From: Adineta vaga
Lineage: Eukaryota; Animalia; Rotifera
Direction: 5' to 3'
Assembly: GCA_021613535.1 (NCBI GenBank)
Contig: CP075492.1
Coordinates: forward strand, 8,866,001 to 8,930,000
DNA: 64,000 nucleotides
In this document: positions 781 through 41,163 of the stretch, one piece after another
Numbering within the stretch: the stretch's first letter is position 1
Layout: each line of letters starts with the position of its first letter
Translations under genes and position numbers: made by a program
The notes under the pieces: generated by a model
The model's database searches: none
What the model saw: the letters and a program-made list of their open reading frames with translations, nothing else
What the model was told of the DNA's origin: nothing

Positions 781-3622
781 ATGTTTTATACACATGCGAT
801 ATTGACCAAACGTGGTCCCTTAGCTCGTCTTTGGCTTGCTGCACATTGGGATAAAAAATTAACGAAAGCACAAATTTTTGAAACGGATATTCGACTTAGT
901 TGCGAATCGATTCTTGAACCATGTCTAAAACTAGCATTACGTACCAAAGGACATTTATTACTTGGAGTTGTACGAATCTATTCACGAAAAACGAAATATT
1001 TATTAGCTGATTGTAATGAAGCGTTTATTAAAATTAAAATGGCTTTTCGGCCAGGAATGGTAGGAATTGAAGGAGCAAATACACATCATGTCAATCCAGA
1101 TTCTGATACACGAGAAGTGTCAATTGCTGCAATAACTTTACCAGAAAATTTTCACGATTTTGATTTAATTGATCTTAATATTGAGTAAGTTTCATCTGCC
1201 TTATCTTCAACTAGTTTATCTAAGAGGATAAAGATTATCTTGAGACATTTTGATACAAACTATTTCTAAGATTGAAATATACGTAGAAGTTATATCGTAT
1301 GTTTTCTAAGAAGAAACATTTTTCAATAAAGAAAACTCATCTGTTGATTCTATTTAGTTATATTGATGATCCATCTCGTTTTCAAATGCATCAAGCACGC
1401 GCAGAAGAAATCACATTGAAAGAAGATTTTATTAGTGTACCTATGCCAATGGATGATGATTTTGGTAAGTTTGTAAAATAAGAAAAATGAACAACGATTA
1501 TTTATTATCATTTATCATTTAGGTGATGCCAATGGACTTGATGAACCTGAGTTCTTTCGTAAACTTCAACCATCACTTCATTTTAATGCACAAAATTCAA
1601 ATATGGATTTAGATAGTATGTAGAGATTACTTTTGAAATAGGATAATTCTTAATTAATTCTTCTTTTATTAGATACTAATATACGCAAAGAACAAAGTAT
1701 TGCACGACCATTTGGTGATGATCCATTTGCATTGGATGGTTTCGGAGATTGTATGTATTTAGAATAGATGATTTAATTTTTGAAGATACTATTGATCTTT
1801 CTCATTAATAAGAATCATTTGTTTGATTCCATAGAAAAAAACCTTATTGAGTATATCCGTTTGAGAACGGTGCAAATTGATTTACAGATGAAAAGAAGGA
1901 ACGGAATATACGAAACGAAGAAATTCCTTCTTCATATATTCTTGATGATGTATCTATAAATTTTTTCTTCGAATTTCCAGTTGCTGCACCTGCTTCAGTA
2001 ATTGGCATTGGTGGTGATAATTCGAATCTATCTAATGCAAAAGATCATTATGATCATGTTATGTCACCATTTCATCGTAAGTTAATTTTTCTAAATTTCA
2101 ATCACACATTTACATATCTTAACTTTACAGAAGATGACAATGAACCTGCTATACCAACACTTGATGATCATGCAGCTCCAGCTAATGCAAAGAATCGAGG
2201 TATGAAGAAAAACTAGGATTTAATCGAGTTTTCTTTTTAAAAATCATCACTATCTTTAGATAACGATGAAAATCGTATGGATATTGAAGACGGAAATCAA
2301 GGTTTACAACACATTCCAGGTGTTGATGATACAACACTTTTATCAAATGTTTCGGATGAATTTGTTCTACCACCTATTTTAACCACTGGTAAAAATAAAA
2401 CAAAAAAGATTTTTCATTTATCACTTTCTTTCGAATAGGTCAAACACCAGCTGCAGCTCGTCAAGCAGCAAAACGTAAACGAAAATTAGTTGTTGACGAA
2501 GTTAAAGAAATCGACAGTACTGCAATGAAAACACAATTAAGTGATACAACAGATATTGTTGGTGTACTTGAACTAGCACCACCAACACGTCGTCTCATGC
2601 ACTTGAAAGAAACCGGTGGAATTGAAAAATTATTTTCTCTCAGTGCTACATCTATGTTTTCAAAAACATTACAACAGGTAAAACAATTATAGTGAATTGT
2701 TTTAGAAAAAACGATCGATTGTATTCTTCGTTTTCAATAGTTATTTACACGGAATATGATCACAAAAGCATTAGATCAAATGCCACCGGATAATTATCAA
2801 ATTCAACATGATCTTGCAATGGAACAACTTGAACGTGATCGAGATGATTCATCCATTGAACAAATGCGTGCATCACATCATCATTATTTAGAAGTACTAG
2901 GTAATAATTCACCGAATCGTTCAAGAAAACGTGGTTTATCACCGGGTCATGAATCAAATATGGATAAACGTCAACGTATCGATTCATTTCTACCGGGTGA
3001 TTCATTATTTTTTCCACCAATGACTACATCCATGGATAATTTAATGGATGTAATGCCAGCACCCATGTCACCGACACGAAAGAGTGGACGAAAAGTTCAT
3101 GAATTAAATCAATTACCACCATCACCATCACGTACACCTGGAAGTGTCCGACGTAAAAAAGGAATGGGACATTTATCAAAAGAAAATCATGACGAACAAG
3201 ATGATGATGATGAAGAACATGGACAAATAACGACCACAGCTCAAGAAGTAAATAATTCTTTTTTTTTCTTCATATAAGATACTTTTTGAATCAATCCCAA
3301 GTCTATGTCTTCCGAATAAATCTACGATGAATTCTTTTTCTAGGACTTTGAATCTGGCAAGAAATTGAATCGTCGTGCTAAAATCATGCTCAATGCTTTC
3401 GAACGTTCTTTTGATTCAGCTGATGCCCTTTCTTTTCATGATCATCTATCATCGGGCAACCCGAATTATCATACAAGAAAATTGACTGCACAAAAATTCT
3501 ATACATTATTAGTATTGAAAAAATTGCAAGCTGTTGATGTTGAACAAAGTGAAGCCTTTGGAGATGTAACAGTAACACCGGGTGTGAATTTTCATCAGTA
3601 TATAACCAGTGGTGGAAGATGA
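781..3622 (+). CDS. RAD21: Cohesin kleisin subunit RAD21/SCC1, multi-exon
   Basis: N-terminal [54 protein letters not shown]; central [25 protein letters not shown]; C-terminal winged helix [27 protein letters not shown]; ExxR separase-type sites (EFFR, EQMR); short GT-AG introns. Confidence 0.96.
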
Positions 3623-4542: not shown

Positions 4543-7507
4543 TCAAAATTTTTCTTCATAAAATCGAAATCGAAATGTTGCACAGTGATTTCGAATTGTT
4601 TGTGCCATTGTTGATGGTCCACAAAAGAAAACATTAACATCATTTGCCATTGATGCATTTTCATTTGAAATTAAATTACTAAATAAATCTTCCCATTTCG
4701 GTCGTCCAAGATGTGTCTTTGATTTTAAACTTGTAAATATATCTTGTCCAGCTACTGCCCAAATTTTCGTAACAAGATCTAATGGAACATTACCAATATT
4801 TTCATCATGTTTGATTTCCGTGAAATATAAATGAATATCAAGAAAACGATTTTCATTCGAATTTGATGCTAAATAACATTCTTGTTCTTGTTCAAATTGA
4901 TGAAGAAGATTAAGAAACCATTCGAAATTTTTGTGATCACGATTAACCCAAATAAAATCTACTTTTCTCAAACGATGATTTTCAACTAATCCTTTGGAAT
5001 TATAATTGATTCCATTACAATGTTTACAAATAACACGTGATGCACGAAATTGTGCCATAAGACTTGATAATATCGATGCGTACGGTGTTATACCAATTCC
5101 ACCACCGATTAAAACAACATGCTTACAATCAAAGACATAACGTGCACATGATGAATAAGGTCCATTAATAACAACTGGCTCTCGTTTTCTTGATTTCGTA
5201 CAACATCTACCCAAATGACTTTCATTTTCATCCTGATCACCATCACCACAATGATCTTGATTCATTGCTTGAAGGTCGGCAACGGATTGTTCTGGATGAA
5301 TATCAGCACGATAAACTTTCATCTGATTTTCATTCGCATCATTGGCAGACATCTCATGAAAACGTTGATAAACTTGTTTAGTCCAATTGCCAACTACTTG
5401 AATATGTAAACGAAGATAGTTTGCATCTTCTGGTGCACTACTGATTGTAAATGGATGAAATTCATAGAGTGCAACACGTGGTAAATTAATACTTATATAA
5501 TCACCTGGTTGAAAACTAAAATATCAATTTCTTGTGTGAATTAGATAGAACTGAGAATATTCAAATTAGATTTACGTGAAATTTTTTGGTCGATGTATAT
5601 TTAAACTAATAACATTGGATTGTTCAATTGTTGCTGAATGAAGATAAGTACGACCACTTCGAACTGAATATCTTGTTAAAATAGAATAAGATTTTTCCAA
5701 TAAAAATAATGATAATGGACCCACAATCCATTTCTAAAAGTACTCATTTTATTTATTCGATTCATAGATCTTTGAAACATGAAACTTACCCAAAAATTTT
5801 CTGCATGAAGAATAAGAAGAACGAAAAATGGAAAATAAAGTAGATGTGTCCAATAGAAAATCTACAAAAACAATGAAGATAAATTCAGTAACAAAACACT
5901 TTTATCTGCTTACTTGAAAATGACCACCACGTCGAATCCATTGCATTGAACAAATAATAATAACAGCAAGTATAATACATAAAATAACACCACTCAATGG
6001 TGCAAAACCACCAACCCATCCTACATTAGGTTTGGTCGTAAACTAAATAGCAGAAAAAAAATCTTTTAATTAATTTCAAAGATAAATCAACATACCATAA
6101 AAGCTCCCCATGAATGATCTAAATATTTCAAATCAATTGTTTTCATTTCAATAGAATTCATTTTTACCTGGTAGTCTACCAAAATTGATCATATGTGCAA
6201 CTGTATGTAAGATAGCTAGTGCACCAATGACTCGTCCAACAACTTTATGAAAATCAATATGATCATCGACAGGTATAATTTTTCGTAGGAAACTGTTAGT
6301 ACGAATTACTAATATGGTATGTTTAAGCATTAATGTAATAATAAGTGCACAATTAAAATTTAATAACATTCCACCAATACGTGCAAGAACAACAAAGGCA
6401 TGTGATTTGGTTACAGATACTCGATAAATAATAACATAGATGGTAAGAGCAAGATTTATTAAGATATATAAAATCAAAACAATAATACGTGATAGATTAT
6501 CTCGAATATAATCTATGGTTAATCGATGCATTTGTGCTTCATATATTGTTTGTTCTTCACAATAACGAGTAAGAAAACGTTGAAATTTATTTACTTTTCG
6601 AGGTAAATTTGTTGGTGAATTAATAAACCATGTTGGATGAACAGTAAAGTGTGATAATGATTCAAGTAAAGTAACATCTTTTGATACAATGGAATAGAAT
6701 TCTTCAAAATCAATTCGTGATTTCTAAATTGATTGAATAATATAGATTTCAATAGTAGATTTCAATCTTTTAGCTTACTTGTTTGAGATGAAATCTTTCT
6801 AGAAGTACTTGTATAACTTCTTGTAAACGATTTCCATCGAATGTTTTTAAAACTTGTAAACATTTTTCATAGAAAAATGCTAATTCATTACTTGTTACAT
6901 AACCATCGGCATCTTCATCGAGCATCATAAAAAATACAAGAGCTCGAACATCCATTGTACTATTGAGAACACGTGTTAATCTTTGTGCTTCACTTTTACT
7001 TAATGTTTTGATATTTTCATCGTCATCTGTTGATGAATAAAGTGCATGGACAAGACGTTCAATAATAAATGGTTGAGTATTGAGTAATTTAGATACTTCT
7101 TCTAGTGAAAGATTCTCATTCGTTAACTGATCACTTGCACGACGTACAAATGTCGGTAAGGATTCTTCAGGTTCATCAAGTATACCATGAAGTTGGATTT
7201 CAGCTCTTTGACGATTTGAAATTGTTCGTTGTACTAAACTTAAAAACAAGGTTGATGGTTATAAGAACAGCATAAGACATTTGGTATTCAATAATACAAA
7301 CTTATTAAAGAATCCACCAGCACTTCCTGATGATGTTCGTAGAAATGAAGAAAACGCTGGAGTCGATTGATGGCTAATTTTACGTCTTAATGGACGTGTA
7401 TGTTGCTTCTTCTGGCGCTCATGCTGTTGCTGTTGCTGCTCTTGTTCTGGGGGTTCTAAGGAGAGTTGTGTTGTAAAAATAATTGCTGGTTGTGATGGTT
7501 GATCCAT
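4543..7507 (-). CDS. EF-hand NADPH oxidase (NOX5-like), multi-exon
   Basis: EF-hand DEDADGYVTSNEL and IDFEEF; ferric-reductase TM region LARIGGMLLNFNCAL..DDHIDFHK..HTVAH; FAD site FQPGDYI..EFHPFTISSAP; NADPH site GPY..VVLIGGGIGITPYASIL..FFCGP; ends FYEEKF. Confidence 0.92.
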
Positions 7508-8581
7508 CGAAAGAGAAGTATGTTGTTTAGTAGGACTAAATAATATTGAACGTTTTAGGTAATAGAAAAAACGATTCGAGACAAACTTTCGTACCTACTA
7601 GACATGATATAATTCTAATACAAGAGAAGAAAGATACGTTCGACGAATAATGCCTTGTTCGCCTATAAACACTCTGAATTTATATCCATACAAAAATGAA
7701 GCGTGACGATGAGAGAAGAACAGTAAAGATTGTACTTTATCGTCTATTATAGTTCTGAGAAGAAGCGAAAAAATCATCCCTCGAGCGACATAATGTTTGT
7801 TATCTTTTTGATTATCGTACGATATGAAGATAATCGAATTTATGCATTAACACAGACACAGTTAAAAAGACAAAATTAATCTCGATTTACATCTTAGATT
7901 TTGAACAGATATATTCGTTTATACCGAGAGAAAGAACAAAGTATGAAACATGTACAATGTTAAACTTTTGACCGTTAAGTACATTTGTGCAGTGAACAAT
8001 GAAAACCGTCATTTGAACTACATTTATATCCGAAAACGCAACGTCACGAATAATTTGATATTTGTACAAAATAAACAGATGATTTATAGTATATGATAAT
8101 AACTATATATGAATCTGACGTTGTTTGTCAAAGTATTTATTCATAACTTAACACATTTTCTATACTTGAAGTTCAATGAAAAAAGTAGAAACTTTAGAAC
8201 TTTATCTCACAAATGACCCTAGTATCACATTAGCGTCGTAGAAGAATAGATACAAAAGATTTCTTTCAATGACGCATCTATTACCTTTACACATATCAAT
8301 CATGACTTACTTTTGTTAAAAACGGATTTACCAAGTCGTAGTTTGAATGAATATACTTTATGAAAGTAATTTATTTCGTCCTTGACAGCTCATTGTTATC
8401 ATGGATCAACGCAAATGAATGTCATTGAAAATAGTTATAGTTAGATAAAAACCAGTTGTTTACTTATTTCTTTATTATTGGATCGAAGAAGTGCAAATTC
8501 CATTCTAATTATATTTTCTTTATTCATATATGTATATATACAAAACAATTCACATTTTCGAATCTAGGATTGTCAATGTAA

Positions 8582-8916
8582 TTAACATCGCCAATCAGGA
8601 ATACATTGACTTTTCGGATGAGAACGACGTGCATAACCACGTTTACAAAAACAACCTTGAACACATTGATAAGTACATGGTTTGAAATATCTTGCATGTC
8701 GAACATCAGTACACGAAATAGGACATGCCGAACCACAATTTAGATACTCCTGATGAGCACCTAAACACCAATGACCAAATAAAAAACCTAAAAACACAAG
8801 ATTTTCATAATGAATATATTTTCATATGCATATCAAACAATCATACTTTGTGTTTGAATGGCAAGGGTAGTTAAAATTAAGAACAGTAGTAGACCGATAC
8901 GAATTGAAAGGACCAT
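8582..8916 (-). CDS. Secreted single-TIL-domain (trypsin inhibitor-like) cysteine-rich peptide, 2 exons
   Basis: Signal peptide MVLSIRIGLLLFLILTTLAIQTQ (8916-8847), intron, then 10-Cys TIL pattern C..HQEYLNCGSACPISC..PCTYQCVQGCFCKRGYAR..QCIPDWRC. Confidence 0.85.
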
Positions 8917-8965
8917 ATTATATATGCAAATGGTACGTGATACTTGTGTGAAACAACTTCTCGAC

Positions 8966-8995
8966 TGAAAATGAAAATGAAAATGAAAATGAAAA
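8966..8995. repeat. (GAAAAT)n hexamer microsatellite upstream of the TIL gene
   Basis: tgaaaatgaaaatgaaaatgaaaatgaaaa read directly. Confidence 0.8.
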
Positions 8996-9554
8996 GAATG
9001 CAAAAAGATTGATAAGAAATGTGATGTAATATAAGATATGTTGTATTCTTCTTTCAATTAATCTATAGACAATGCAAGTGTTCTCAATATTTGAAGACAG
9101 TCTGTCTGAGTGATTGATTTTATTTTCAAAACAAGACGTGTAAAATGATGCTTGTTTGATAATTGAGATAAGGAGGGAGAGAAAAGGTGTGAGAATCATA
9201 TTCTATCGACACTTGTTTAGATGATCAATTAACAACTAAAACAGCACTTGAAAAATTTTTTCATTCATTTAATAGTGAAGAATATGAATACAGGTAACAT
9301 GTGATACTCGATGTTTTTTGATTGATAGCAACAAAAAGAATTAGCTTCGTTCATGACTGTATACATATGTATATATATATATATATATTTCGTTTAGTTT
9401 TTTTTCTTAAACAAGACGACAAGTGGACTACAAAAACAAAAAAGAAAGAAAGAAGAGCAAACAAAATGAATCAGGCTATTCCAGGAAACAAATAGCACAG
9501 ATACATATAATGATATAGAATCCAATGTACAGACAAAAAAAAACAAAAGTTCAA

Positions 9555-12500
9555 TTAATAAGACGAAGGTGTAGTTGATGTTGTTGAATTGATTTTACCC
9601 ATTCGTCGTTTACCTTGATAAACAATCTTTCCTGATGCAACTAAATCAATTGCTTTCGGATATAATTGTTGTTCAAGTGTACGTAAACGATTTTCTAATT
9701 GCATTTCAGTTTCCGTCGGTGCAACAGATAAACTTTCTTGAGCTATAATTGGTCCATCATTATCTGTATCAGATTCACCAATAAAATGAACTGTTACACC
9801 TGTTATACGAACACCTGTTTGCAAAGCATCACGAATGGGTGAAGTACTATGACGAAATGATGGTAATAATGATGGATAAATATTTAATAATCGTCCACGC
9901 CATGCCATAATAAATGTATGTGATAAACGACATGTATAACGATCAAGAATAACTAATTCACAGCCATGTAATTGTAATTCATCATCTACTTTTTGATCCT
10001 ATGAAATAAGAAAATGAATGTATTCGATACGAAAAATATTTTATGAGTTATTTACTAGATCATAATGTCGAGCAGCATATTTTTTTGGTTGAATCACTTT
10101 GGTAACAACTGAAGGATACAATTCATTTACACGAGCTATATCCGATAGACCAGCTACTGTGGCAAGTACAAGAGCAATTTCGAATGCACAATCAAGTGTT
10201 GATGTACTATATGCAAGAAGTGAAAGTAATGAAGTATCTAAAAACAAAGTAGAAAATTGAAGTTTTCTCTTTTTCTTTCATTTTGATCGCGATAGTTACC
10301 ATTATTTGAAAGAAGTACAGCACAACGTGTTTTATCATTTGCAATGGGTTGTTTCATTCGATCTTTAATAACAATAGGTAAACTATTATTCATTAATGTA
10401 GCAGCCGTTTGATATGGTTTTGGATATTTAAAAGAAATATTTTTCAATTGAACCGTACGTAGTTGTGGTGGAGTTATAATTGGTTGTTGTTGTGGTGTAC
10501 GAATGGGTTTACGTACTGGACTTGGATCTGAGAAAGAAAATATTATTCAAACTCATGAATATAACATTCAACTTACTAATAGATATGAATGTTCCTAAAT
10601 AAAAACTTGATGTATGTGTTTCAGTTAAATGACGAAGAACATCATCCATTGTTGTTTTCGTGTGGTCAATAAGAAGTAAATAATCAACGCCACAATTGAA
10701 ATATTCGAACATTTCATCTTGACTAAAACCACTCTGAAAATGAATGAATGAATGAATGAATGAATAATGATAGAGAGAAAAAAAAGTTTTCAAATCCATG
10801 ATCTTACATGTTGATAGATCCAAGTAAAAAGAGCTGGCATTACAGGCCATTGTTGACCATTTAATTCCACATTGAACGTTGATGAAGATGAACCAAGTAA
10901 AGATTCAATCGTACGAGCAAGACCAACATCTAAATGAATATAAAATTTGAAAAATCAAACATTAACAAATGATCGATATGCATCTCTTTCAATAAATTAT
11001 CACTCCAATCATTTTTCTTTTCTATGAGAATTGTTAACATACCTTTAAGATATCGGATTGCTTTGATCGTTCGATTTTTAATCAATTCTGTAATGGTTTT
11101 TGCTAATGATGAAGCCAATATGGATGATTTTTGTAATAATAATGAAAAAAATGATTCTTCTTCACCATCAACAGTTCGAAAAGGTACTGTATCATTCAAA
11201 TGAATATTTTTCTTTTGAAATAACTCTTTCAATTGTATATAACCTTGAGTATTAACTGTACCCGAACTACATCGAAGTGCCACTAAGAAATCACCTTCAT
11301 TAATAGTTGGATGATTTGTATTATTAAATGTTATCAATTCTCTATCGCCTAAACCTGTACACAATGAACTAAATGATGATGATGATATTGCAGTTGTCGT
11401 CGTTTTAAGAAGTGTACAATCCAATTGTTGACATGCTTGTTCAATTCCTTGATAGAATCGTTGAATTGAACGACGAGATGAAATCGGTGAAGAATAACAT
11501 TGAATATAAAGTGTTCGAGCACAAATAAGATCATTAGCACAACGAACAGTTAATTCATGACCAAGATATTCAAAAACAGTTTGACTATCACTCATATCAC
11601 TATCATTCAAATTAAATAAAGCTGCTAATGAATTTAAATTGATTGTCGATGAGATCAGTACAGGTTGATTATAAGTTTTCAGATCAATTTTACTTGTAAG
11701 ATCAAAACATGTTTCACCTTCATGAATATTATGAACATCAAAAGTACCATTATTTTGATAAATATCCATATGTTCTAATTTTGGTGTATCAGATACTGTA
11801 CCAAATGCACGTTCAAAATCCATTGGTTCAGTATCATCTTCATCATCCTCATCACTTGTATCATTCTCTTCATTATCATTGTCTTTTTCTTGTTCAGAAT
11901 TGTTTGAATTACGACGACGCTTTGCTCCATTACGATTCCATTTATTAGATGTTGAAAGAAGTGATTTCTTCTTTTTAACTTTCTTCTTTTTTCCATTCAT
12001 TAAACCACCAGTTGACGAATGATGACGATCACCATGAGTTTTATACCTAGAATAAATTTTTGTAAATTTTCAATATTCAAAACACAAATATTCTCTACCA
12101 TTCAATTGCATGACCACCAATATCCGATTTAAATAAAAGATCTTCTATATTTGCATGTTGTTTAATATATTCACATGCAAGTACTGATTGAATTTGTGCT
12201 TCCTGTAATGTTGAACCATAACCAAGTACATTAAAAATTCGTTCACCATTTGTTGTGAGAAAACTTGTTTCACCTGTTCCATTATTATTCACATTGACAT
12301 CAGTTTGATTATGAAATATTTTCACTTTATTATTTTTCATTGCCGTTAATAAAACTTTATTTGAAATAGTAAGAGATGTTTTTGTTGATGTAATTGTAGT
12401 GTTCACACAATGAACACGACGTTTTTTACTTGTTACAGGAATTATTGGTACCGATGGTAAATCAAGTGCATATTGAAGAAATACATCTGATTCACATAAT

Positions 12501-13942
12501 GATAAAAGAATTTCAGCTTCGGGTTCTTCAAATGTAGAGATATAATCAAGTAGACAAACTTGATTATAATTCGTTCCTTGAATTAATAAACGAAAACCAA
12601 ATAAATGACGAATCGTTGGTGAACATCGAAGAGTTCGCTCAACAATACGACGACGAACATAGGATAATTGTTTCGATGTTAAATATGGACATGGACCATA
12701 AGCACCCATACGTAATGGATCAGATTGTATAATTGGTAATTGTGTATAATCACCATCTCCATCACTAACAATGTATAAAGTACAAACTTGATTATCATCA
12801 AGAGAATAACCATGTTCGAGAATGATAGATTGATTTAATTTACCAAAGATATGATCCTAAAATTGAATATAGATAAAGTATGATTTCTACTATAATAGTT
12901 TGCTTTTTTTTACTTCAAAAACAGCTCTAATTGTTTGTATTGTTTCTTCTTGACTTCTACAATTTATCAAACCATTACCATGTGTTGCACGAACAATCCA
13001 TTCTTGTTGATTAGGATATCTAATTCAAATAGAAATACAATATAGTTTCGAAAATCATACACTTTATTTTCCTTACTTATTGATAAAAACTTCAACATCT
13101 TCCTGATTTAAACAATGTGCCCATTCTAATGTTGGAATTTTATGTTTATTCATGAATTGTTTGGCATTTAATTGATTATCTGTTAAAGCTAATGTATCCA
13201 CTGAACATCCTAAATAATGTAAACCATGTTCACAAAGTCGTGCTTCAAGTTCTTCGAAATAAGATGTTTTATTTAATGAAATAACTAAATCAATTTGTTT
13301 TGAATCGACAAAATCGAGAACATCTTTTTCATGTTGAAATAATGTCGAAATTGTTCCCGCTGACTGATCAATTGTTGTGCCACTATTACCAGGTGAGATA
13401 AAAATTTTAAAATTTCGTCGTTGTAATAATTTCCATACAAGTGCATGTTCACATGCTGTTGAACCAATGACAAGTATGGTTGCTGGTCCTGGTTGTGCTA
13501 ATGATGTACATGTTGAATAGGCATCATTATCATCCGAACGTGCCAAGACACGTTCGAAAACACGTAAATCAGATGGTGCCGTATTGACATCATTATTTAA
13601 TGATTTTGTAAATAGAACACGATCGAATAATTTCTGTAATATTTTAGAATAGATATTTGTTGATGATGAAACAAAAAGATTTCCACCAAGTTCTTTTAAA
13701 TGTAATAAACGTTTCGTTGGTACTTCAATAATCGGTTGTGTTATGATATCATCAACACTGTTCAATTGTTCTTTGATTGCTTCAGATGATTGTTCAGTTT
13801 CATTATCAATAATTAAACCCGATTGAGTTTGAGCGACATTTGTCGACGACGATGTCGACTGGTTCTCACGTTGACGATAGGCGCCCGATGAAGAGATACG
13901 CGACCGCTTGTTGCCGCCACCACGGTTGTTCGCCTGCGACAT
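9555..13942 (-). CDS. Divergent trifunctional GARS-AIRS-GART (purine biosynthesis) paralog, probably catalytically dead; 8 exons
   Basis: GARS-like ILVIGSTACEHALVWKL, ISPGNSG, MGAYGPCP, GERIFNV..GSTLQEAQ, DIG; AIRS-like CANDLI, GIEQACQQLDCTLL, EGDFLVALRCSSG, WP.MPALFTWI, DEMFEYFNCGV; GART-like RCAVLLS, LLNIYPSLLPSF, TGVTVHF..GPIIAQE. Exons join in frame through GT-AG introns with no stops. Confidence 0.85.
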
Positions 13943-21708: not shown

Positions 21709-23391
21709 TCAATGTTTGACTCGTTTACGTCTTCCACTGGCATAAGTACTTTCGGAAGGTGCTGTAGTGCTTTCTGTTGCTGGATTTTCTTCTACATCCT
21801 CGCATACAGCACGTTTACTGGTGTTAACTATTGGAGGTGTTACGATGACATGCGAAGGATACATAATACTATCCACTCGTTTCGTATTGTCACGATCATC
21901 AGCTAACCATGGATGTTGAAGAACATCGTCCATTGTTAAACGTTTTGCTGGATCAGTGCACATCATTTTTCGGATAAGATCTTTTACCGATTCTGACACA
22001 TCGGACCAAAATTCATTAGGAAATGTATAAAGACCCTGAATAATTTGATCATTTAAAGGTGTGCCACTAATCGATTCACTAAATGGTGGATAACCAACTA
22101 GAAATAGATAGAAGATACGAAATAGAATCAAGAAAAACCAAGTCTTTTCCTTACCTAAACAAATATATAGAATCACACCTAAACTCCAAACATCAACTTT
22201 ATTTGTATAACTTGCTTCACCACGAGTTGAAAGAACTTCTGGTGCTGTAAAATAAAAATGTTGTTTTTTCTAGAAAATATATATTCTTTCTGTTACCCAG
22301 ATAATTTGGTGTACCACAAAATGTTTTCATCAATGATGTTTCATTAATAAATCTTGATAAACCGAAATCTGTAATTTTCACCAATGTTTCATTCGTATCT
22401 GGTAATGTTAATAGAACATTTTCTGGTTTTAAATCACGATGTGTTATCGAACGATCATGTAAATATTTAACTCCAAGACACATTTGTCGAAAGAGAAATT
22501 TACTTGTTGCTTCATCAAATTGAGCATTAGCTACGATACGATCAAATAATTCTCCACCTTCGACTAATTCAAGAATAATATAAACAGCATTTGAAGTATC
22601 ATAAATATCATATACACGAATGATACATGGATGATCAAGTTCTTGTAAAATTTTACATTCTGATTGAATTTGTTGATTAAATGAATGAGCTTGAGCACCC
22701 AATATTGTAAAATGTTTTTTCGCGATAATTTTCATTGCAAATCGATTGCATGTACCTAAGCAACAGGATGAATTTCACTAGGAAAAGGAATGAATTTCTC
22801 ATACCTCGAATAAAACATAATTTAACTTCTCCATATGCACCACGTCCAATTTCTTTTGATACAATATATTTTTCTCTTACAACATCAGGTATTGAACTAT
22901 CTTCTTTAGCATTTGTATCAATATAAACATAAACACGATTTGTTTTTGATGCTAAAGCAATTTCTGCATTATTATCGAGAACATGTTTTTTATTTTTGCC
23001 AATCTTATCTCCATTTACATATGTACCATTTGACGAGAGATCTTGAATATAAACAAAATCTTTTATTGTATCACGAATGATTTTAAAATGGGTCGATGAA
23101 TATGTTGCATAATATTTCGATGTTTGAATTTCTTTTGAATCAAGCATTATGGAACATTTTTTACCACGACCTAATGAGTATTCATTTTCAGTTAAATTAA
23201 TTGAAGGAAAAAGTTTATTTATAGATAAAAGTCGTCCCCAAATGTCTAAAGTTTGTTCGTCATTTTCTTCATCGGGAAATGTGTTGCCTGCTTCACCACA
23301 TTCTTGCGTTATTTGAGTTGGTCCGTCGTTCTATAAAATAGGAAAATGATTTTTAATTCGAATAGAATCAGCTAAACGCAAAACTAACCAT
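21709..23391 (-). CDS. CHEK2: Checkpoint kinase 2 (FHA + Ser/Thr kinase)
   Basis: TQ motifs; WGRL..LGRG..YSSTHF..IQDLSSNGTYVNG FHA domain; IGRGAYGEVKL, AMKII, HRDLKPENVLL, KITDFGLS..SLMKTFCGTPNYL, DVWSLGVILYICL..GYPPFS. Confidence 0.95.
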
Positions 23392-30257: not shown

Positions 30258-31336
30258 ACACGATTCAAATATATATTTGTTAAAAGAATATATTGTGTCA
30301 ATATCACACCAAAAAAGTTAGACAAAGACTGTTCAGTGTTTTTCAGTGTTCAGCAGTTGCCTTTTTCTTTTCAATTACATTCTGTTGATCCGATTTAAAT
30401 GTATTATATAAAATTTCGTCAAGACACTAAAGCATCTACTGAAATGAATCATAAACAATTAAGTCTAATGTATTTTTTGATCGAAATTCTACTAAAATAT
30501 AAAGATAAACAATACTTTGACTCATTCTAATACTATTCACGTCAGAGAATTCTATTAGTAGTACACGAAAATCTATAGTCTCTTATTGGTAGATTTCGTT
30601 TATGATACAAATGAGTCATCGTAAAATTTTATTGATATCATACTCATATATATTTTTAACAGCAACAAATTCACCTACATACTGACGTCATTTGTAGAAC
30701 TTTATAGATATGGTTGTTATCACTACTTCCATGTTCTATATTCAAACATTATAGACAACCTTCTGTATCACCATACTCCAGTATACAGATAATACAACTA
30801 AAAAGAATAATCTCATTCAGTTATACAAAAATTTGTCTATCCTGAAATCAGATTTTATATTTCACGATCTTTGGACAAACAGAATATGTACATTGGTTGA
30901 GAATAAATATAACATTGTTATTACCAGAAGACTGTTGCACCTGTATTATGTATTATTGCATATCGTATTTTTTTATTTGTCGAAACACACATAATAATCC
31001 TTTATAAAACATGGAAGAAATGGATAATATATACGTCCGATAAAGAATATCAACGATAAAGAAGTTTCTTCCTGAAATATAAAACTTTTATTGCAAATAT
31101 CTTAGTAATCCAGACGAGAGTAAATGCATGATTTTTTCTCACGAACTTTACTTCTCAATCTGAAAAAAATATAAAGGTTACTAATATTCTCTTCTGTTTT
31201 ACCAGCAAACCTACTCAATGTCGTCATCAATATGTTGACTATATAAATCAATATATCTGTTGTCAATATTCATTTCAAGAAGAATATACAGATCGTGAAG
31301 AAATACAGTTAAAGAATAAAATACGTTTTGATAATC

Positions 31337-31717
31337 ATGGCAGTATCAGCTAATGTACGTGTGTTGATCATATTGGGAATCATTGGTCTATTTGGAATTA
31401 TTACTTTTGCCCTTGCTGCAGCTACTCTTGGAACTTTGAACAGACGTGATAATGATTTCAAAAATCAATTAAATGAGCTTTCGAATAAAATAGATGAACT
31501 CATTAAAAACAAAACAATAACAACAACAACAACAACACTAACACCAACTACACATAATACAACGTTACCTATAGATCCAACTATCGCAACAGTAACTGTA
31601 AATCCATATGACACAACGGTATCTTTAAACCCAACTATCGCAACAGTAACTGTAAATCCATATGACACAACGGTATCTGAAGGTCCATCTACCGTAACAG
31701 GAAGTGCAAATCCATAA
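31337..31717 (+). CDS. Anchor-only paralog A of the M28 array (TM + coiled coil + Thr-rich stalk), 126 aa
   Basis: MAVSANVRVLIILGIIGLFGIITFALAAATLGTLN is near-identical to the N-terminus of the M28 gene at 33956; no peptidase domain follows. Confidence 0.75.
   Translation: MAVSANVRVLIILGIIGLFGIITFALAAATLGTLNRRDNDFKNQLNELSNKIDELIKNKTITTTTTTLTPTTHNTTLPIDPTIATVTVNPYDTTVSLNPTIATVTVNPYDTTVSEGPSTVTGSANP
31577..31717 (+). repeat. 54-bp-period coding tandem repeat (two copies with 48 identical bp plus a degenerate third)
   Basis: ccaactatcgcaacagtaactgtaaatccatatgacacaacggtatct at 31577 and 31631; third copy begins at 31685. Confidence 0.9.
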
Positions 31718-33005
31718 CTACGAATACAAGTCCTGTTGTCAGCCTAAAATAACTTCACACAATATCAACCAATTTGATCAAATGAATCAATATTATCTTC
31801 AATATTGATGAGTCATTATTATAATGTACAAATACTAAATACGTATGATAAGTTCTTCTTTGTTTTTAACAAGTTTTTTATTTTATGTTCTTTCCCATTC
31901 AAAAATAAAATTAATTACACCTACAAAATTTTGTATTTATTGAAAAGTTAACTTCTTATCCAAACCAATGATTTTAATGAAATGTTGTACTGAAGTAGTA
32001 ACAGTGTCACTTACAATATTGTCCGTTAGAAATGAAACCTAAATGTCCAAGAATGATTTTAATGCCAAGTACTCTTCTATGAGTATTACTCGTATAATTT
32101 CTTTCTATTTATTTAGTAATATACATCAAGTTCCTGTGATTTGCTCGTGGATAACTTGACTGATATTCAGATATATTCATATGTTTCAAAAGTAGTTTAT
32201 CTTCGTAATTTATTCTTCAATGTGAAGTTTTTTTTCTTCAGAAGATCATCGAATGCATAAAATTGTTTGTCTATGTATAGAGTTTATCTCTTTCACTGTT
32301 TAGTTTGATAAAGATTCTTTTAAGACTAAAAATACGAAATCATCGTTCGAAATAGCAATCTGTTAGAAATCAGTTGATAAATGCTGGCTATCTTCAATGT
32401 AATTTGAAGGACTCGCATGATATGGATCTCATTCCTTTCCTACGATTTAATATTTCAACAAGGAACATAACCTTCCTTCTCTAAGACTTGAGTATACATA
32501 CAGAACTACTTCATAAATCTTGTCTTTATTTGATCATATTTTGATGTAAATCTTTTCTGCAATGCATGTCATATATTCAAAAAAAATCAATGACTCCTTA
32601 TCTCTAGCTGAAAACCGAGATGAACACTAAAAATATCATGATATTATACATGAAGATGATTAATATATATATATATATATACGTCAGATAAGAATACGTC
32701 AAAGATGAAGTATTGTTCTCTTGAAATATAAATCTATTATTGCCATCGATTAGTCATCCTATTGCACTGGTATGCATGACTTTTCTTATGTAAATTCATT
32801 TTTACAATCTTAAAGAAAATAAAAGGTAGTGATATTTATCATTTCGTTTTACTAAAAACATATTCAATATTATCATCGACCTGTTGTCTTATAGACCAAT
32901 CGAATCAGTATTGATTTACAGTTTAAGAAGAATACTAGGTAGAAAGAAGTTTTATTCTCCCAAGACAATTTGAAACGTTTTGCTGTTAAAGACATTTTAT
33001 TAGAC

Positions 33006-33230
33006 ATGGAAGGATCAGCTAATATGCGTGTTCTTATTGGATTAGGAGTTATTACTCTGTTTGGAATCATTACATTTGCACTTGCTGCTGCTACTCTTGG
33101 AACTCTGAATCAACGATATAATCATCTCAATGAACAACTAAATCATCTCAAGGAACAAGTAGCTGATATCCCGAATAAGTTGTTTACAACGACGGAAATG
33201 ACTGTGTTTGATAATGAAACTGTTAGTTAA
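33006..33230 (+). CDS. Anchor-only paralog B of the M28 array, 74 aa
   Basis: MEGSANMRVLIGLGVITLFGIITFALAAATLGTLNQRYNHLNEQLNHLKEQV.. with its own stop and a downstream AATAAA. Confidence 0.75.
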   Translation: MEGSANMRVLIGLGVITLFGIITFALAAATLGTLNQRYNHLNEQLNHLKEQVADIPNKLFTTTEMTVFDNETVS

Positions 33231-33955
33231 CGTACTGATTTATCGAGAGACTATTATGAAGGAATGTATCAGTGTTTTCTCACTTGAACATAGATGAAAG
33301 AACAATTATACTTCCATACTATGCAAAGTAGATCGTTTTGAATGAAATATTCTTTTCAAATTTAAATAAAACACAACATATTCAAACAGTTTTTCTTCCG
33401 TAATGGTATAATTAAATTTCTCAACATTGACGTATTAGTTCAAGTCTAATTAGATTATAAATAAATACGACTTTAAAATTTCTGTAATAATGATTGCATA
33501 TGATAGGTTAATTGTATTCCAGTGAGAATAGTACATATGTTTCATTTTCACATTTTTAAAGACAAATAAATATCTTGAATGACAATTGAAAATGATAGTC
33601 TAAGATAAGAAAAGATTGTATTAGCAGCTAGTCGAAGACATTTTCTATTGTGTGAGATTTGGATTTCTAATTCATAAATATGTCATATAGCTCATAAATA
33701 ATGTATTCAAAAATTTTCTTTATCATGTAAAACATAATTTACACAGAATGGATACTTGACAGTTTCCAGGCAAATAATGATTTTGTCTTCGTAATTAAAT
33801 TTAATCGTTTAGATAATGACAAGACACAAATAATAAGTTTGTTCGTAAATGGTAGATAAGTAAGCCTACTCATTTTCGTTCTATAAATTCGTATACATTA
33901 ATGTATTTGCAATATTTCTTGAAGAGACAAGTTTTGTTTTTGAAAATTAGTCGCT

Positions 33956-35692
33956 ATGTTGAATGAAGGATCGATAAATGTGCGTTTACTGGTTATATTA
34001 GGAATAATCGGTTTGTTTGGAATAGTTACTATTGCTCTAACTGCTGCTACTCTTGGTACCGTTAATAAGCGACTAGATACTATTGATAATAAACTATCAG
34101 TATTAGAGAGAATCCAACAGTCATGACAACTATGTCTACAACTACATCAACGTCAACAACTACAACAGCAACAACAAATATCGTGGGACCCAGTCAGAAT
34201 CAATCACTTGCGACATCGATTAACGTTACTGACGTTTTAAAACATCTTCAAGAGCTACAAATTATTGCGGATAAGTCAAATAATACTCGAGCTATAAATA
34301 CAATTGGTTTTAATCGAACACTTCAGTATATTAAGGATACTCTTCGCAATGAAACCAACTTAAATATAACCGAAGACAGTTTTAAAGTAAGAGACTTTGC
34401 TCTCAATACTAATCCTATCCTAATATCGTCTCGATCGATGGCACTATCGAAAACTACACCTACTCATCGGATGCTAAAAAATCTGATTTTTTACATGTTA
34501 AATATTCGAATAATTCGTCTGTTTCGACAATTCATGAATTAAATATTATTCCCAATGGTGGATGTAAAGATACAGACTGGGAAAATTCTAAACCTGATCG
34601 AGTAGCTCTTATCAAAAGAGGAGGTGATTGTGCATTTCGTGATCGCGCTTCTCAGGCTGCGAAATATAATGCAACTGGAATCCTCTTCTATAATAATGGT
34701 GCATCATCGGACAACATGTTACCCATAGAAATTACTCTTGCTCAAGAGAATGTTCTACCTGCGTTGTTTCTTTCATATAGAACCGGTCAAGATCTCGCTG
34801 ATACAATTCAAAACTCATCGTCAAATGTAACTGTTCAATTAGGTATTGATCTGAAACTGCTCCCAGATTTCCCTGTTGGAAATATTTGTGCTGATACACC
34901 GACAGGTGATCCAACTCAAACGATTGTCGTTGGAAGTCATAGCGATAGTGTACCAGCCGGTCCAGGCATCAATGATAATGGTACACTCTCAAGATTACAT
35001 GTCTTTCAGATTCATTCTCTGTTGTAGGTAGTGGTAGTGCTGCCAATCTCGGTCTTGCTATTGCACTTGCTCGACTCTTTCAAACATCAACATATGCAAA
35101 ATATTCATATCGTGTTCGATTTTGTTGGTGGGGTGCCGAAGAAGTTGGTCTTCTTGGTTCTGACTTTCATGTCAAAACAGCTAAAAATTCTACAGATGAA
35201 GGTGAACGTCTTCAAGATTATCTTGTCAACTTAAACTATGATATGCTTGGCTCACCTAATTATATCTTTGGTATTTATGATGGGCAAACAGCAAAAAACG
35301 GTACTCCAGAAAAAGCGCTTAATGGAAGCAGAAAGATTACTGCTCTATATCGTGATTGGTTTCAAGGACAGAAACTTCCGTGGAGCAATACTGACTTTAG
35401 CGGTCGAAGTGATTATGGACCATTTTTAGCTGAAGGTATTGTTGCTGGTGGATTATTTTCTGGTGGAGATGGGGTTAAAACACAAGTACAACGTGATTAC
35501 TATGATCAATTACTCGGTCAAGGTATGGGAGGAATCGCTGGAGCTACTTATGACCCATGCTATCATAAAGCATGTGATTCAATTCAAAATATCAATCCAT
35601 TTGCTTTAAATAAAATGATACAAGCAGCTGCTTATATTTTGGAAACGCTCGGTCGGGAACATAATTTGAAAGAATGGCTTTATCCTCAATAA
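33956..35692 (+). CDS. PA-domain M28A aminopeptidase copy 1 (two 2-bp frameshifts near 34108 and 34430: pseudogene or assembly error)
   Basis: TM anchor, Thr stalk, PA domain (ALIKRGG.C.F), GSHSDSVPAGPGINDNG|SGS, WWGAEE, NYDMLGSPNY, GRSDYGPF, DPCYHKACD; intron 34981-35027. Confidence 0.85.
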
Positions 35693-36233
35693 GTAACATT
35701 TCATTTTTGTACTAAAGATTACGAATACAGAAGGATATGATGAACAAATTGTTGTGTCTTTGTTTTGTGCATTAAATAAAATCATCCTTTATAGATATGT
35801 CTGAAGAATAAATCAAGAAAAAAAACTGCATCATAAACCAAATATGTGAATTAAACGTCGATAAAATGTTCTCTCTTCGAATGATAAGATTTAAGAATTA
35901 CTGTAAAAGCTGATGTTATTTTGAAGATTACTCAGTACATATCAAACACACTTCAAAGTTGAATCACTCAGTTATCAATAAAACTTGAAAACTACTGATT
36001 TGCAATTGTTTTATTACATGGTTTTTGTCAGTAACAATGAAACAAATATCTCGTAAAAAAAGTCTTTGTCATATTATTATATGGCTCATAATGACAAAGC
36101 ACAAGGCTTATCTTGATTAACAATCTTCTGATTTTTCTAATCGACCTCTTTAAATAATACAATATAAAACAATTGTTGCTTATCATTATTCGTTTTTTGT
36201 CCTTGATACAATCAAACGAATAAAAAAAGAATT

Positions 36234-38107
36234 ATGTCTTCGTCTTACCAATATCGCAACGAAAGTGATGGTGCTAGTGGCACACTGAGTAGAGGTACGA
36301 AACTCGCTGCCATTGCCATTGGACTGGTGATAATACTAACAATCGTTATCTTTGGCCTTTCCATAGCCATCTTAGTCAAAGTAAATGGTAGTCAATCAAA
36401 AACAACAACAACAGTGGGAACAGCAGTAACAACAACAACAACAACAGTGGGAACAGCAGTAACAACAACAACAACAGTGGGAACAACAGTAACAACAACT
36501 GCATCAAACTTCTTGAATTCGGTATTAGCTGAGTCTATTCGTATTAAAGATGTCATGGGTCATCTCGACGGATTACAACGTATTGCAACCAATGCTAATG
36601 GTAATCGAGCTGTTAGTACACTTGGTTTTAATCAGACACTTGATTATATTACTAATAGTCTTTCCATGCATACAGACTATAATGTAACGAAAAGCTTCTT
36701 TAATATCCGACAATTTGCTTTAGCGAGTAATCCAATTTTCATGTCGTCTATTAATGGTGTGACTAAAAATTATACATATTCAGATGATCTTTCTGCTGCT
36801 GATTTTTATCATATTCAATTTTCTACCGCTGCTGATTTCTCCACTTTTGAGTCCATTTCTGTTATTCCTGGTGTTGGATGTTTCGATAGTGACTGGACTA
36901 GTGTAAATCCTTCTCCAGCTGGAAAAGTAGCTTTAGTTAAACGAGGTGTTTGTCCATTTTCTGATAAAGGTGCACTTGCTGTTAAATATAATGTCAAAGC
37001 ACTTCTACTTTACAACGATGGTGACGGACCAGATCGATTATCACCCATTGCTATTGGTCTTGGCCAATCGAACAATTTGCCTGCACTATTTCTTTCATTT
37101 CCTGTAGGCCAGGCGCTTGTTGATGCGGCTCAAAATGCATCAACAAATACCGGTGTTAAACTTACTATTAATGTACAAAATCTACCTTTATCACCCGTAG
37201 GAAATATTTGTGCTGATACACCGACAGGTGATCCAACTCAAACAATTGTTATTGGAAGTCATAGTGACAGTGTACCAGCTGGTCCAGGCATCAATGATAA
37301 TGGTACATTTTCAAGATTACATATCTTTTACATTCATTCTCTATTGTAGGTAGTGGTAGTGCTGCCAATCTCGGTCTTGCTATTGCACTTGCTCGACTCT
37401 TCCAAACATCAACATATGCAAAATACAAATATCGTGTTCGATTTTGTTGGTGGGGTGCCGAGGAGATTGGTTTACTTGGTTCTGACTTTCATGTCAAACA
37501 AGCAAAGCTCGCGACAGCTGTTGGTGAACGTCTTCAAGATTATCTTATCAACTTAAACTATGATATGCTCGGTTCACCTAATTATATCTTTGGTATTTAT
37601 GATGGGCAAACAGCAAACAATGCTACACCACCACTAGCTCTTCCAGGTAGTAATAAAATGAGTGCTCTATATCGTGATTGGTTTCAAGGACAGAAACTAC
37701 CGTGGACCAATACTGATTTCAGTGGTCGAAGTGATTATGGACCATTTTTAGCTGAAGGTATCGTTGCTGGTGGATTGTTTTCTGGTGGAGATGACACGAA
37801 AACACAGGCAGAACGAGATTACTATGATCAATTACTTGGTCAAGGATTAGGTGGAATTGTCGGAGCTATTCATGATCCATGTTATCATCAAGCTTGTGAT
37901 TCAATTCAAAATATCAATGTTTTTGCTTATGAAAAGATGGTACAGGCAGCTGCTTATGTTTTAGAATATTTAGCACGACAAAATGATTTAATTACATGGC
38001 TTTATCCAGCGGTAGACCTACACGAACACATGATCAATCGTCACGACAAAAATATGACTCTATTAATGAATATTTTGGCATGCCATATCTATGAAAGCTT
38101 TTACTAA
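36234..38107 (+). CDS. PA-domain M28A aminopeptidase copy 2 (1-bp deletion near 38007 alters only the tail)
   Basis: Same Zn-ligand motifs (HSD, DNGSG, AEE, DM, YH); intron 37303-37349; relative to copy 4 the ancestral stop would be at 38094. Confidence 0.92.
36402..36500 (+). repeat. Coding minisatellite (TTTTVGTAV)x~3 in the stalk of M28 copy 2
   Basis: Repeated acaacaacaacagtgggaacagcagta units. Confidence 0.85.
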
Positions 38108-38556
38108 ACTCCTTTTTGTGTTCTGTTCTTTTCTTTACTAACAATAAATAATTAAAATACAATTCTAATAAATTTTTGTTAATTAAAACACAGCGTTCTA
38201 CTTATTATACATCTATGCAAAAAAAGAAAGTAAAAAATTCATGATGGCAGAATAGAAAGTTTTCGGAAGGTTAACTATATAGTGTAATAAATCTACGATA
38301 GTTTTCTATTTTTTATTATGACATATATTATTTTCTTTTTTTTCATGATAAATATGAAATTAAACCAATAAATTTTAGTTGACATATGATTCTATTAACG
38401 AGCATATTTTTATTGTTATGATCTTGTACGAGGTCATTAACGTCAGATAACATCATTGTTATAAGTCATTTTTTTTCTTTCTAAATTTCTGATATAAATA
38501 TCGAGTATTCACATCTCTTTTCTTTCTTTAACAATTTTATTTTCTTAAAATCTATC

Positions 38557-38773
38557 ATGGACAATAGTGTCAATGAATATAAAACTTTGAAATGTATGAA
38601 AATTTTAGTACCAGTTGTTGGAATTGGTATTATTTTAACGATAGTAACATTTGGAATAGCTATCGCAACTTTAGTCAAGGTCAATCAAGGATTCGATAAG
38701 ATTGAAACTAATAGTGTTCAAACAACGCCCAGCACGACTGCAAGAACAACAAATCCAATTACTACAACTACAC

Positions 38774-38806
<33 letters not shown>

Positions 38807-40403
38807 ATCGACCATTTTTCGATGCGATCTTGCCAAAACAAATTCATATTCAACAAGTTATGGATCATCTGAATGAATTACAACGAATTGCTACAGGTGC
38901 AAATGGAAATCGTGCTATTCATACAACGGGTTTTAATCAAACACTGGACTATATCACTGATGTCCTAAATACAAAAACAAATTTTATAGTCAAAACAAGT
39001 TTTTTTCCTGTAAGAAAGTTTGATCTTTCGAAAGATCCTGTCTTTAGTTCATTGATTAATGACACCATTACCAACTATACATATTCAAAAAATCTCTCTA
39101 TCAGTGATTTTTCCGTTGCTCGTTATTCGACATCTGTAGATTTTCCTGATTATATCGAACTGGTAGTTATACCAAATGAAGGCTGTTCCGATATCGACTG
39201 GAATAACACTAATCTGACCGTAGTTGGCAGAGTGGCTTTAGTTAAACGAGGTACTTGCACATTTATTGAAAAAGCTAAGTTGGCAATGCAATATAATGCT
39301 TCCGCTATTTTAATATACAATCGTGGAAGTTCAGACAGTGACATACAACCAATAACTATTGACTTAGGTCAAGAAAATAAAATTCCAGCATTGTTTCTCT
39401 CTCACAATATTGGCCAACAACTGATTGAAGCCATTGCAAATCCAGCAAATAATGTTACAATATATCTTAATATTGCTGTTCTCAACGATTTACCAAGTCC
39501 TGTAGGTAATATATGTGCAGATACGCCTACAGGCGATCCAAAGCAAACAATCGTCATCGGAAGTCATAGTGATAGTGTACCGGAAGGTCCTGGTATCAAT
39601 GACAATGGTAAGAGAGATCTACTTCTCAATATTCCGTTAGTGCATATTCAATTTTAGGTAGTGGAAGTGCTGCAAACCTCGGTCTTGCTATTGCACTTGC
39701 TCGACTTTTCAACACATCATCATATACAAAATATCCATATCGTGTTCGATTTTGTTGGTGGGGTGCTGAAGAAGTTGGTCTTCTTGGGTCTCGTGATCAT
39801 GTCAGGAAGGCTAAAAATGCTACTGATGAAGGTGAACGTCTTCAAGATTATTTAATTAATCTAAACTATGATATGCTTGGTTCACCTAATTTTATGTTCG
39901 GCATCTATAATGATGAAACTGCAAAAAATGATACACCATCAGAGGCACTTCTAGGTAGTAAAAAAATCAGTAATCTTTTTCGTGATTGGTTCAATGAACA
40001 GAAACTACCATGGACTAATACTGATTTTGATGGTCGAAGTGATTATGGACCATTTTTAGCTGAAGGTATCGTTGCTGGCGGTCTAGCTACTGGTGCTGAA
40101 AAGAAGAAAACAGTCGAAGAACGTGATCGTTATGAACAATTACTTGGTCAAGGATTAGGTGGATTAGCTGATGTTGCTTATGATTCATGTTATCATCAAG
40201 CTTGTGATTCAATTCAGAATATTAATGTATTTGCTTATGCAAACATGGTGCAAGGAGCTGCTTATGCTTTAGAATATTTAGCGCGACAAGATAATTTAAC
40301 TACATGGCTTTATCCAAATGGTCGAACAATACGTTCAATTAGTCAAACGTTACAGCAAGAATATGTTTCTTATAATGAATATTTTCGCTTGCCTTATTAT
40401 TAA
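38557..40403 (+). CDS. PA-domain M28A aminopeptidase copy 3 (intact)
   Basis: Full ORF with intron 39608-39657 and all Zn-ligand motifs. Confidence 0.93.
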
Positions 40404-40958: not shown

Positions 40959-41131
40959 ATGAACGGAAACCAAGTCACGCCTGGGAATAGCCATGAAAAA
41001 GTTACATATGCAGTAGATAAACGTAGTAAACTGTTTCTACCAGCAATTTCGATTGGAATTATTTTGGCTCTTGCTACACTTGGTGTTGCAGCAGCGACAT
41101 TAGCTATCGTCACTAGTCGATTGAAAGATTC

Positions 41132-41163
<32 letters not shown>

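Follow-up and report, generated by a model that had tools for sequence, protein, structure and literature searches.

The locus described here raises the question of what a bdelloid rotifer does with a trifunctional purine enzyme that has lost its catalytic motifs. The gene lies on the minus strand of a 64,000-nucleotide (nt) stretch of Adineta vaga DNA (the window), on contig C3 of a six-contig, 100.8-Mb assembly, and it joins a segment of the alpha-kleisin RAD21 to a degenerate GART, the animal enzyme that carries GARS, AIRS and GAR transformylase domains in one chain. The answer we arrive at is that an old metabolic enzyme has probably been turned into a chromosome protein; we favour the reading, while remaining some way from certainty, that pseudo-GART now acts within the nucleus, binding STAG as a ring-less kleisin mimic. 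A previous account drawn up from the DNA letters (the sequence-only reading) had recognized the three enzyme domains, and this part of it stands, but it overlooked the N-terminal 150 amino acids (aa) that contain the RAD21 segment, as well as the insert, basic and acidic, that separates GARS from AIRS.

Splicing of the window DNA yields a gene that runs from an ATG at 13942 to a stop at 9555 through nine exons, rather than the eight counted in the sequence-only reading, and eight GT-AG introns (57, 57, 52, 113, 74, 49, 62 and 57 nt). Its 1288 codons contain no internal stop, in agreement with the uninterrupted frame of more than 1200 aa, free of stops and frameshifts, that had been proposed, and the product is 100% identical to the A. 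vaga protein UJR09324.1 (I4U23_013567) at NCBI. Genome and Pfam searches were run with single exons or with database proteins, among them UJR09324.1, which is the same as the spliced model. Pfam scans of the exons recovered GARS_N (E 5e-12), GARS_C, a weak AIRS match and Formyl_trans_N (E 2e-27), which is the animal order, as had been claimed; the sequence matches to human GARS (E 9e-24) and to the human GART domain (E 6e-28) are far beyond chance, and the best PDB matches of all three domains are human chains. The gene and its parts are listed below, where conservation refers to a set of 13 full-length bdelloid orthologs and NLS denotes a nuclear localization signal.

9555..13942, minus strand: RAD21-segment/pseudo-GARS/pseudo-AIRS/pseudo-GART gene (identity to UJR09324.1)
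13942-13077, 13019-12914, 12856-12099, 12046-11043 and 10929-10808, minus strand: exons 1-5 (spliced window DNA)
10733-10577, 10527-10300, 10237-10056 and 9998-9555, minus strand: exons 6-9 (spliced window DNA)
13895..13924, minus strand: basic N-terminal motif (aa 7-16), K-R-x-R in all bdelloids, a possible NLS (alignment)
13595..13834, minus strand: RAD21-derived STAG/SA-binding segment (aa 37-116, corresponding to human RAD21 318-393; sequence and profile match)
12046..13486, minus strand: pseudo-GARS, ATP-grasp fold (aa 153-577; Pfam, human match, AlphaFold and motif alignment)
11962..11994, minus strand: NLS-like lysine cluster (aa 595-605), in 13/13 orthologs, in place of the AIRS N-terminal segment (alignment)
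11827..11907, minus strand: acidic low-complexity tract (aa 624-650; sequence)
10581..11706, minus strand: pseudo-AIRS, PurM fold (aa 691-1003; PDB match, AlphaFold and motif alignment)
9627..10336, minus strand: pseudo-GAR transformylase (aa 1069-1265; Pfam, human match, AlphaFold and motif alignment)

In 13/13 full-length bdelloid orthologs, GARS, AIRS and GART have lost nearly all of their catalytic motifs (GARS and AIRS residues are given in the human numbering of PMC2978367). In pseudo-GARS, the equivalents of R13, the B-loop GLAAGK, D217/K219/R220, N229 and N290/R292/D295 are gone, and the equivalents of E14 and E297 are the only catalytic or substrate residues that persist across all 13 sequences. 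Pseudo-AIRS has lost its TDGVG, GGETAEM, HSNG and HITGGG motifs together with H620 and H680 (13/13), with the Asp of the Dx4GAxP motif mostly retained. The transformylase triad consists of Asn106, His108 and Asp144 in the E. coli numbering; in 13/13 bdelloid proteins, other sequence stands in place of this domain's phosphate loop and of its LAGFMR folate motif, and the catalytic His has become Tyr in 12/13 (the Adineta and Rotaria types) and is retained in Didymodactylos. All of the motif changes quoted in the sequence-only reading were found, at aa 160-166, 299-305, 368-377, 428-437, 791-796, 838-847, 1075-1084, 1159-1166 and 1179-1187. These losses suggest a protein without catalysis in any of its three enzyme domains, and the folds of all three are predicted to be intact: the AlphaFold model of GARS has a predicted local distance difference test score of ~90 and a template-modelling (TM) score, by target length, of 0.82 to human 2QK4, and the corresponding TM scores are 0.75 to 2V9Y for AIRS and 0.85-0.88 to 1MEO/1MEJ for the transformylase. 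As canonical enzymes were present in the input alignments, these AlphaFold and Foldseek checks are biased toward known folds and are supporting rather than independent. Motif loss, predicted folds and the selection described below thus bear out the proposal of a triple pseudoenzyme with retained folds.

Compared with animal trifunctional GART (PDB 2QK4, 2V9Y and 1MEO), the bdelloid protein has the same domain order and predicted folds, but it is devoid of catalytic and substrate motifs in all three domains, carries an extra 150-aa N-terminus with the RAD21 segment, and has the lysine cluster and acidic tract where the AIRS N-terminus would be. Lizard GART-like proteins (XP_061483737.1, A0A670K0J3 and XP_072850199.2) resemble it in being full-length with several catalytic motifs altered, and share the transformylase His-to-Tyr change with most bdelloid copies, but they lack the N-terminal RAD21 segment and their AIRS domain is far less eroded. 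These proteins, from Rhineura, Podarcis and Pogona, have altered GARS loops and AIRS motifs as well as the triad change, and may constitute an independent squamate pseudo-GART paralog.

The gene is not a paralog of a working GART, as had been assumed, since the assembly contains no GART other than this gene and its C6 ohnolog (chromosomes 3 and 6 of A. vaga are ohnologous; PMC8494291). A canonical insect GART query matched only these two degenerate ohnologs, as did GARS_N, and searches with GARS_A, AIRS_C and Formyl_trans_N added unrelated enzymes only. The remainder of the pathway was screened in the A. vaga chromosome-level assembly. Family searches gave no match for ATIC or PFAS in this assembly, and PPAT was not found there, as the purF search returned only a weak amidotransferase (35 bits versus a cut-off of 350) that looks to be of the asparagine-synthetase type and was rejected. 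PAICS is present as two intronless ohnologs with inserts (L018:1276-2964 on C2 and L019:382-1977 on C5), annotated 'saicars', and both are degenerate, the AIR-carboxylase His and several synthetase residues being changed relative to human PAICS. Copies of this kind are widespread among bdelloids and carry no obvious extra domain; to judge from these residues, they are a second dead remnant of the lost pathway. As a positive control, both ohnologs of ADSS were found exon by exon by the same search, which can therefore detect ordinary purine genes in this intron-rich genome. Allowing for an assembly gap or very divergent replacements, we infer that A. vaga is unable to make purines de novo, and bdelloid rotifers seem to have lost this synthesis. 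The sequence-only reading had noted that the want of any other route to these steps in a purine-prototrophic animal would mark this copy as the working enzyme; with the rest of the pathway also missing from the assembly, being the sole GART does not make it so.

Several other matches were set aside as candidates. The sole PF01071 match in the genome (C3:19.45 Mb; L002:4441-6729) is an intronless fusion of 762 aa that combines an ATP-grasp ligase with a low-specificity threonine-aldolase-like part and looks horizontally acquired. The AIRS_C matches are selenophosphate synthetase, and the other formyltransferase matches look like mitochondrial Met-tRNA formyltransferase and a HoxX-like protein. 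At L015:2354-5223 (C3:11.53 Mb), HoxX-like formyltransferase/enoyl-CoA-hydratase-like frames run into a FolD-like dehydrogenase/cyclohydrolase, possibly forming a multi-domain folate protein.

What the protein might do instead is suggested by its N-terminus. When exon 1 was compared with the genome, it also matched the Rad21 gene (window 2438-2683) and the C6 ohnolog of Rad21. Residues 37-110 align with the RAD21 chain of the SA-RAD21 crystal structures 9HMS, 7ZJS and 4PJU (E 8e-8 to 2e-6), and HHalign of the segment against six RAD21 segments gave 99.25% (E 5.5e-20). The matched stretch is the STAG-binding region of human RAD21 (PMC9767379). The equivalents of S334, I337 and L341, which are pocket residues of RAD21 (PMC10279526), and of L385 and F389 in its SA-binding helix (PMC3709894) are retained as S53, I56, L60, L102 and F106, respectively. 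One ohnolog group has Ile at the F389 equivalent, a residue that some rotifer Rad21 proteins also carry there, and the STAG-contact positions show conservative changes only. Columns that are conserved in RAD21 are preferentially kept in the segment (Fisher p 0.018) and preferentially invariant (p 0.005). AlphaFold predicts three helices (53-61, 76-85 and 100-115) at low confidence, as would be expected for a peptide that folds on its partner. On the partner side, A. vaga has two STAG ohnologs in which D326, L329, K330 and W334 are retained. A weak secondary match to the region of human RAD21 separase site 2 (3-5 bits) was set aside as chance, and an ESM Atlas feature search gave no hit with the N-terminal part and retrieved GARS clusters alone with the enzyme part.

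The likeness to RAD21/Scc1 is thus confined to a STAG-binding segment of ~76 residues, with its pocket residues, and to one intron position common to both genes. Pfam scans of every exon and of the complete Didymodactylos protein found no match to the SMC-binding domains Rad21_Rec8_N (PF04825) and Rad21_Rec8 (PF04824); as RAD21 has these domains at its N- and C-termini and the bdelloid protein does not, the latter cannot bridge SMC3 and SMC1.

The shared intron position and the gene neighbourhood indicate where the segment came from. A Rad21 gene is located ~6 kb from the fusion gene on C3:

781..3622, plus strand: intact gene for the alpha-kleisin Rad21, from which the N-terminal segment probably came (exon 1 match and gene reading)
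2439..2677, plus strand: Rad21 exon for the STAG-binding segment, with a phase-0 intron (2678-2740) downstream (sequence comparison)

The two genes are neighbours in four genomic contexts in all: Rad21 is close to the fusion gene on C6 as well, Didymodactylos has it 5 kb upstream on the same strand, and in a metagenome bdelloid it lies 7 kb downstream. In Didymodactylos, intron 1 of the fusion gene is in phase 0 and directly follows SKTLQK, which is the position of the Rad21 intron after SKTLQQ in both Didymodactylos and A. vaga. The shared phase-0 intron and the adjacency point to a DNA-level copy from the neighbouring Rad21 gene that predates the split of Didymodactylos from Adineta and Rotaria: the GART gene that bdelloids inherited from their animal ancestors would have received a genomic piece of the adjacent Rad21 on its 5' end, and de novo purine synthesis would have been lost in the bdelloid lineage, before or after this capture, which may itself have preceded or followed catalytic loss. 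Exon capture from a neighbour, with a shared intron left as its trace, makes a clean origin story.

The fusion gene is under purifying selection. The C6 ohnolog has ten exons and an intact 1281-aa frame; A. ricciae, A. steineri and several Rotaria species have orthologs of both ohnolog types, and Didymodactylos carnosus has one that is further removed. The Nei-Gojobori ratio of nonsynonymous to synonymous substitution (dN/dS) of pseudo-GART amounts to 0.16 in the comparison with R. socialis and to 0.32 for the ohnolog pair, well away from the value near 1 that the sequence-only reading associated with decay; the comparison with Didymodactylos was left out, as dS is close to saturation. The best-conserved part of the protein is the RAD21 segment, with a dN/dS of 0.12 against Rotaria socialis, 62% invariant columns and 79% identity between A. 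vaga and Didymodactylos, followed by the transformylase; the corresponding values for GARS, AIRS and GART are 23, 24 and 42% for invariant columns and 42, 37 and 53% for identity. Two independent 4.2-kb contigs (JGI 3300002346 and SRR5248462) hold the full 1285-aa open reading frame of a related bdelloid without introns; their flanks are short and their ends almost coincide, as would fit an assembled, spliced mRNA of one such animal. Rotaria sordida and R. sp. Silwood1 additionally have short, internally deleted copies of the gene's N-terminal part, which are partial duplicates or mis-predictions.

In the ring-less kleisin mimic that we favour, the RAD21 segment would occupy the kleisin site on STAG, completing the composite STAG-kleisin pocket for YxF-motif proteins, and without SMC-binding ends pseudo-GART could not close the cohesin ring. 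The dead enzyme domains would provide a folded scaffold that probably dimerizes through AIRS, as human GART does (PMC2978367), and would thereby present two STAG-binding arms. Such a two-armed complex could tether or bridge DNA or chromatin sites, or could titrate STAG away from true cohesin; bridging of DNA is conceivable because the SNM-UNO complex of the fly, a module of STAG and a kleisin segment, binds DNA (PMC9767379). STAG binding, dimerization, DNA tethering and cohesin regulation would all follow by analogy, and a nuclear location is suggested by the basic motif and the lysine cluster. The strongest clue to function is the STAG-binding RAD21 segment itself: it is exactly this unit that was retained, and its conservation tracks the RAD21-conserved and STAG-contact positions. 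That no purine pathway is left to serve also counts for this reading.

Several observations weigh against this proposal. The segment has no basic KRKRK stretch, carries a 2-residue deletion after G367-G368 and has an altered LDLAP loop, and the T390 position is D, a position that is also variable among invertebrate RAD21s. No conserved ExxR separase site adjoins the segment in the 13 orthologs; a DFER sequence (DxxR, aa 653-656) follows the acidic tract in 12/13 and is absent in Didymodactylos, and it is a weak separase-site candidate only. A dedicated STAG paralog of the SNM type was not found beyond the two STAG ohnologs, although a very divergent one could be missed, and pseudo-GART would therefore compete with Rad21 for the same STAG. 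Dimerization is uncertain, as the N-terminal part of AIRS is replaced, and the canonical enzymes in the AlphaFold alignments bias the models of the scaffold.

Other explanations of the gene have to be weighed against this one. An artefact of prediction or assembly that joined a Rad21 fragment to GART might be conceived, given that a Rad21 gene lies nearby and a local mis-join could have occurred, but the RAD21 segment and GARS are within one continuous exon and the full frame recurs on the two independent intronless contigs; the fusion is moreover intact in both ohnologs and in at least 8 named species or lineages, with dN/dS values of 0.16-0.32, so that both the artefact and a decaying pseudogene are refuted and their likelihood is negligible. 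The role offered by the sequence-only reading, a dead paralog that scaffolds or regulates the purinosome beside a working GART, is largely refuted and highly improbable. Pseudo-PAICS is likewise kept across bdelloids, and the two dead proteins might still interact, but with PPAT, PFAS and ATIC not found and PAICS degenerate there is no purinosome to scaffold, and the chromosome-level assembly in which ADSS was readily found holds no canonical GART. It is also very unlikely that one domain has kept or changed its catalysis (the C-terminal domain might, for instance, transfer formyl groups or hydrolyse formyl-folate, or an ATP-grasp reaction of a new kind might have arisen): Didymodactylos retains the triad Asn and His, and the folds are predicted to be intact, yet the His is Tyr in the 12 Adineta- and Rotaria-type sequences, the substrate-binding loops are gone in 13/13, and the upstream and downstream enzymes of the pathway are absent.

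Two alternatives concern the segment and the scaffold more directly. A ligand-gated version, in which STAG binding is combined with folate or nucleotide binding by a dead domain, likeliest the transformylase, so as to couple metabolism to cohesin, would extend the kleisin-mimic reading rather than exclude it, and we regard it as unlikely. The transformylase is 86-88% identical between ohnologs and genera, with a dN/dS of 0.11-0.20 and its 42% invariant columns, which is beyond the need of a passive scaffold, and it retains the triad Asn, an Asp within the 144 loop and the counterpart of E173; set against this, its phosphate loop and folate motif are replaced throughout, GARS is without its ATP and phosphate ligands, AIRS has lost its Gly-rich loops, and strong conservation would fit a protein interface equally well. 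It is likewise doubtful, a little more so, that the RAD21 segment was repurposed and lost STAG binding, serving another partner or an intramolecular role in a scaffold that has nothing to do with cohesin. The fixed changes peculiar to the segment and its identity of only ~40-48% to any RAD21 would be consistent with such a history, but precisely the STAG-binding unit was kept, and the pattern of conservation follows the positions that matter for STAG.

The nearest known parallel to a ring-less kleisin mimic is UNO (univalents only) of Drosophila, a member of the SNM-UNO-MNM complex that keeps only the internal stromalin-binding region, human RAD21 320-394, and through it binds SNM (PMC9767379). 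Comparison was made with the published description of the UNO family, which is defined by the UNO N-terminal domain and is restricted to brachyceran flies. In both proteins the two SMC-binding ends are missing, a kleisin segment is fused to unrelated domains, and the distribution is lineage-restricted. However, the segment is N-terminal in the bdelloid protein and C-terminal in UNO, and the fusion partner, unlike that of UNO, is a dead trifunctional enzyme of 1100 aa. Two features of UNO, a clear separase site and a dedicated STAG paralog, were not found for the bdelloid protein, and the shared intron indicates a separate origin of its segment, from rotifer Rad21; for these reasons we do not class it as UNO. 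On the sequence comparisons, it is best described as a GART by descent that fails the catalytic tests, not a kleisin, and UNO-like in design.

In A. vaga, meiosis is non-reductional with bivalents and germ-line repair is delayed (PMC9710870); against this background a function in meiosis or repair would be attractive. In its most ambitious form, the proposal would make the protein what UNO is in flies, a dimeric linker, made from a dead metabolic enzyme, that is bound to STAG, bridges DNA and holds homologs or broken chromosome pieces together in this meiosis and germ-line repair, possibly metabolite-gated or released by separase at DFER; we consider this rather improbable as a whole.

A literature search, which left subscription journals mostly uncovered, returned no description of a RAD21-GART fusion or of purine-pathway loss in bdelloids, and the supplements of PMC10809525 contain nothing on the pseudo-GART gene; the fusion is apparently undescribed so far. 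Should it bind STAG, it would be the second independent ring-less kleisin mimic after UNO and, in the literature searched, the first known example built on a metabolic enzyme, and thereby a bdelloid-wide candidate for chromosome pairing, cohesion and break repair in ancient asexual animals that resist desiccation and radiation. Our data also lead to the prediction of purine auxotrophy in a free-living animal, for which no report was found in the literature searched, and suggest that the annotations 'phosphoribosylglycinamide formyltransferase' and 'saicars' are misleading in bdelloids.

A number of features were observed around the fusion gene. Between it and Rad21 lie an NADPH-oxidase-like gene with EF hands (window 4543-7249, minus strand) and small TIL-domain genes (8524-9057, minus strand), an order that recurs on C6 and in L028-L030. 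The metagenome bdelloid has a Piwi/Argonaute gene directly upstream of its fusion gene (L028:4019-8894), and in this lineage several introns are missing from the fusion gene and from Rad21 alike. Elsewhere in the window, positions 21709-23147 (minus strand) contain a gene with FHA and kinase domains that appears similar to Chk2, the DNA-damage kinase, and positions 31328-42029 (plus strand) contain at least 4 tandem genes for putative membrane-anchored M28-type aminopeptidases with Thr-rich stalks.

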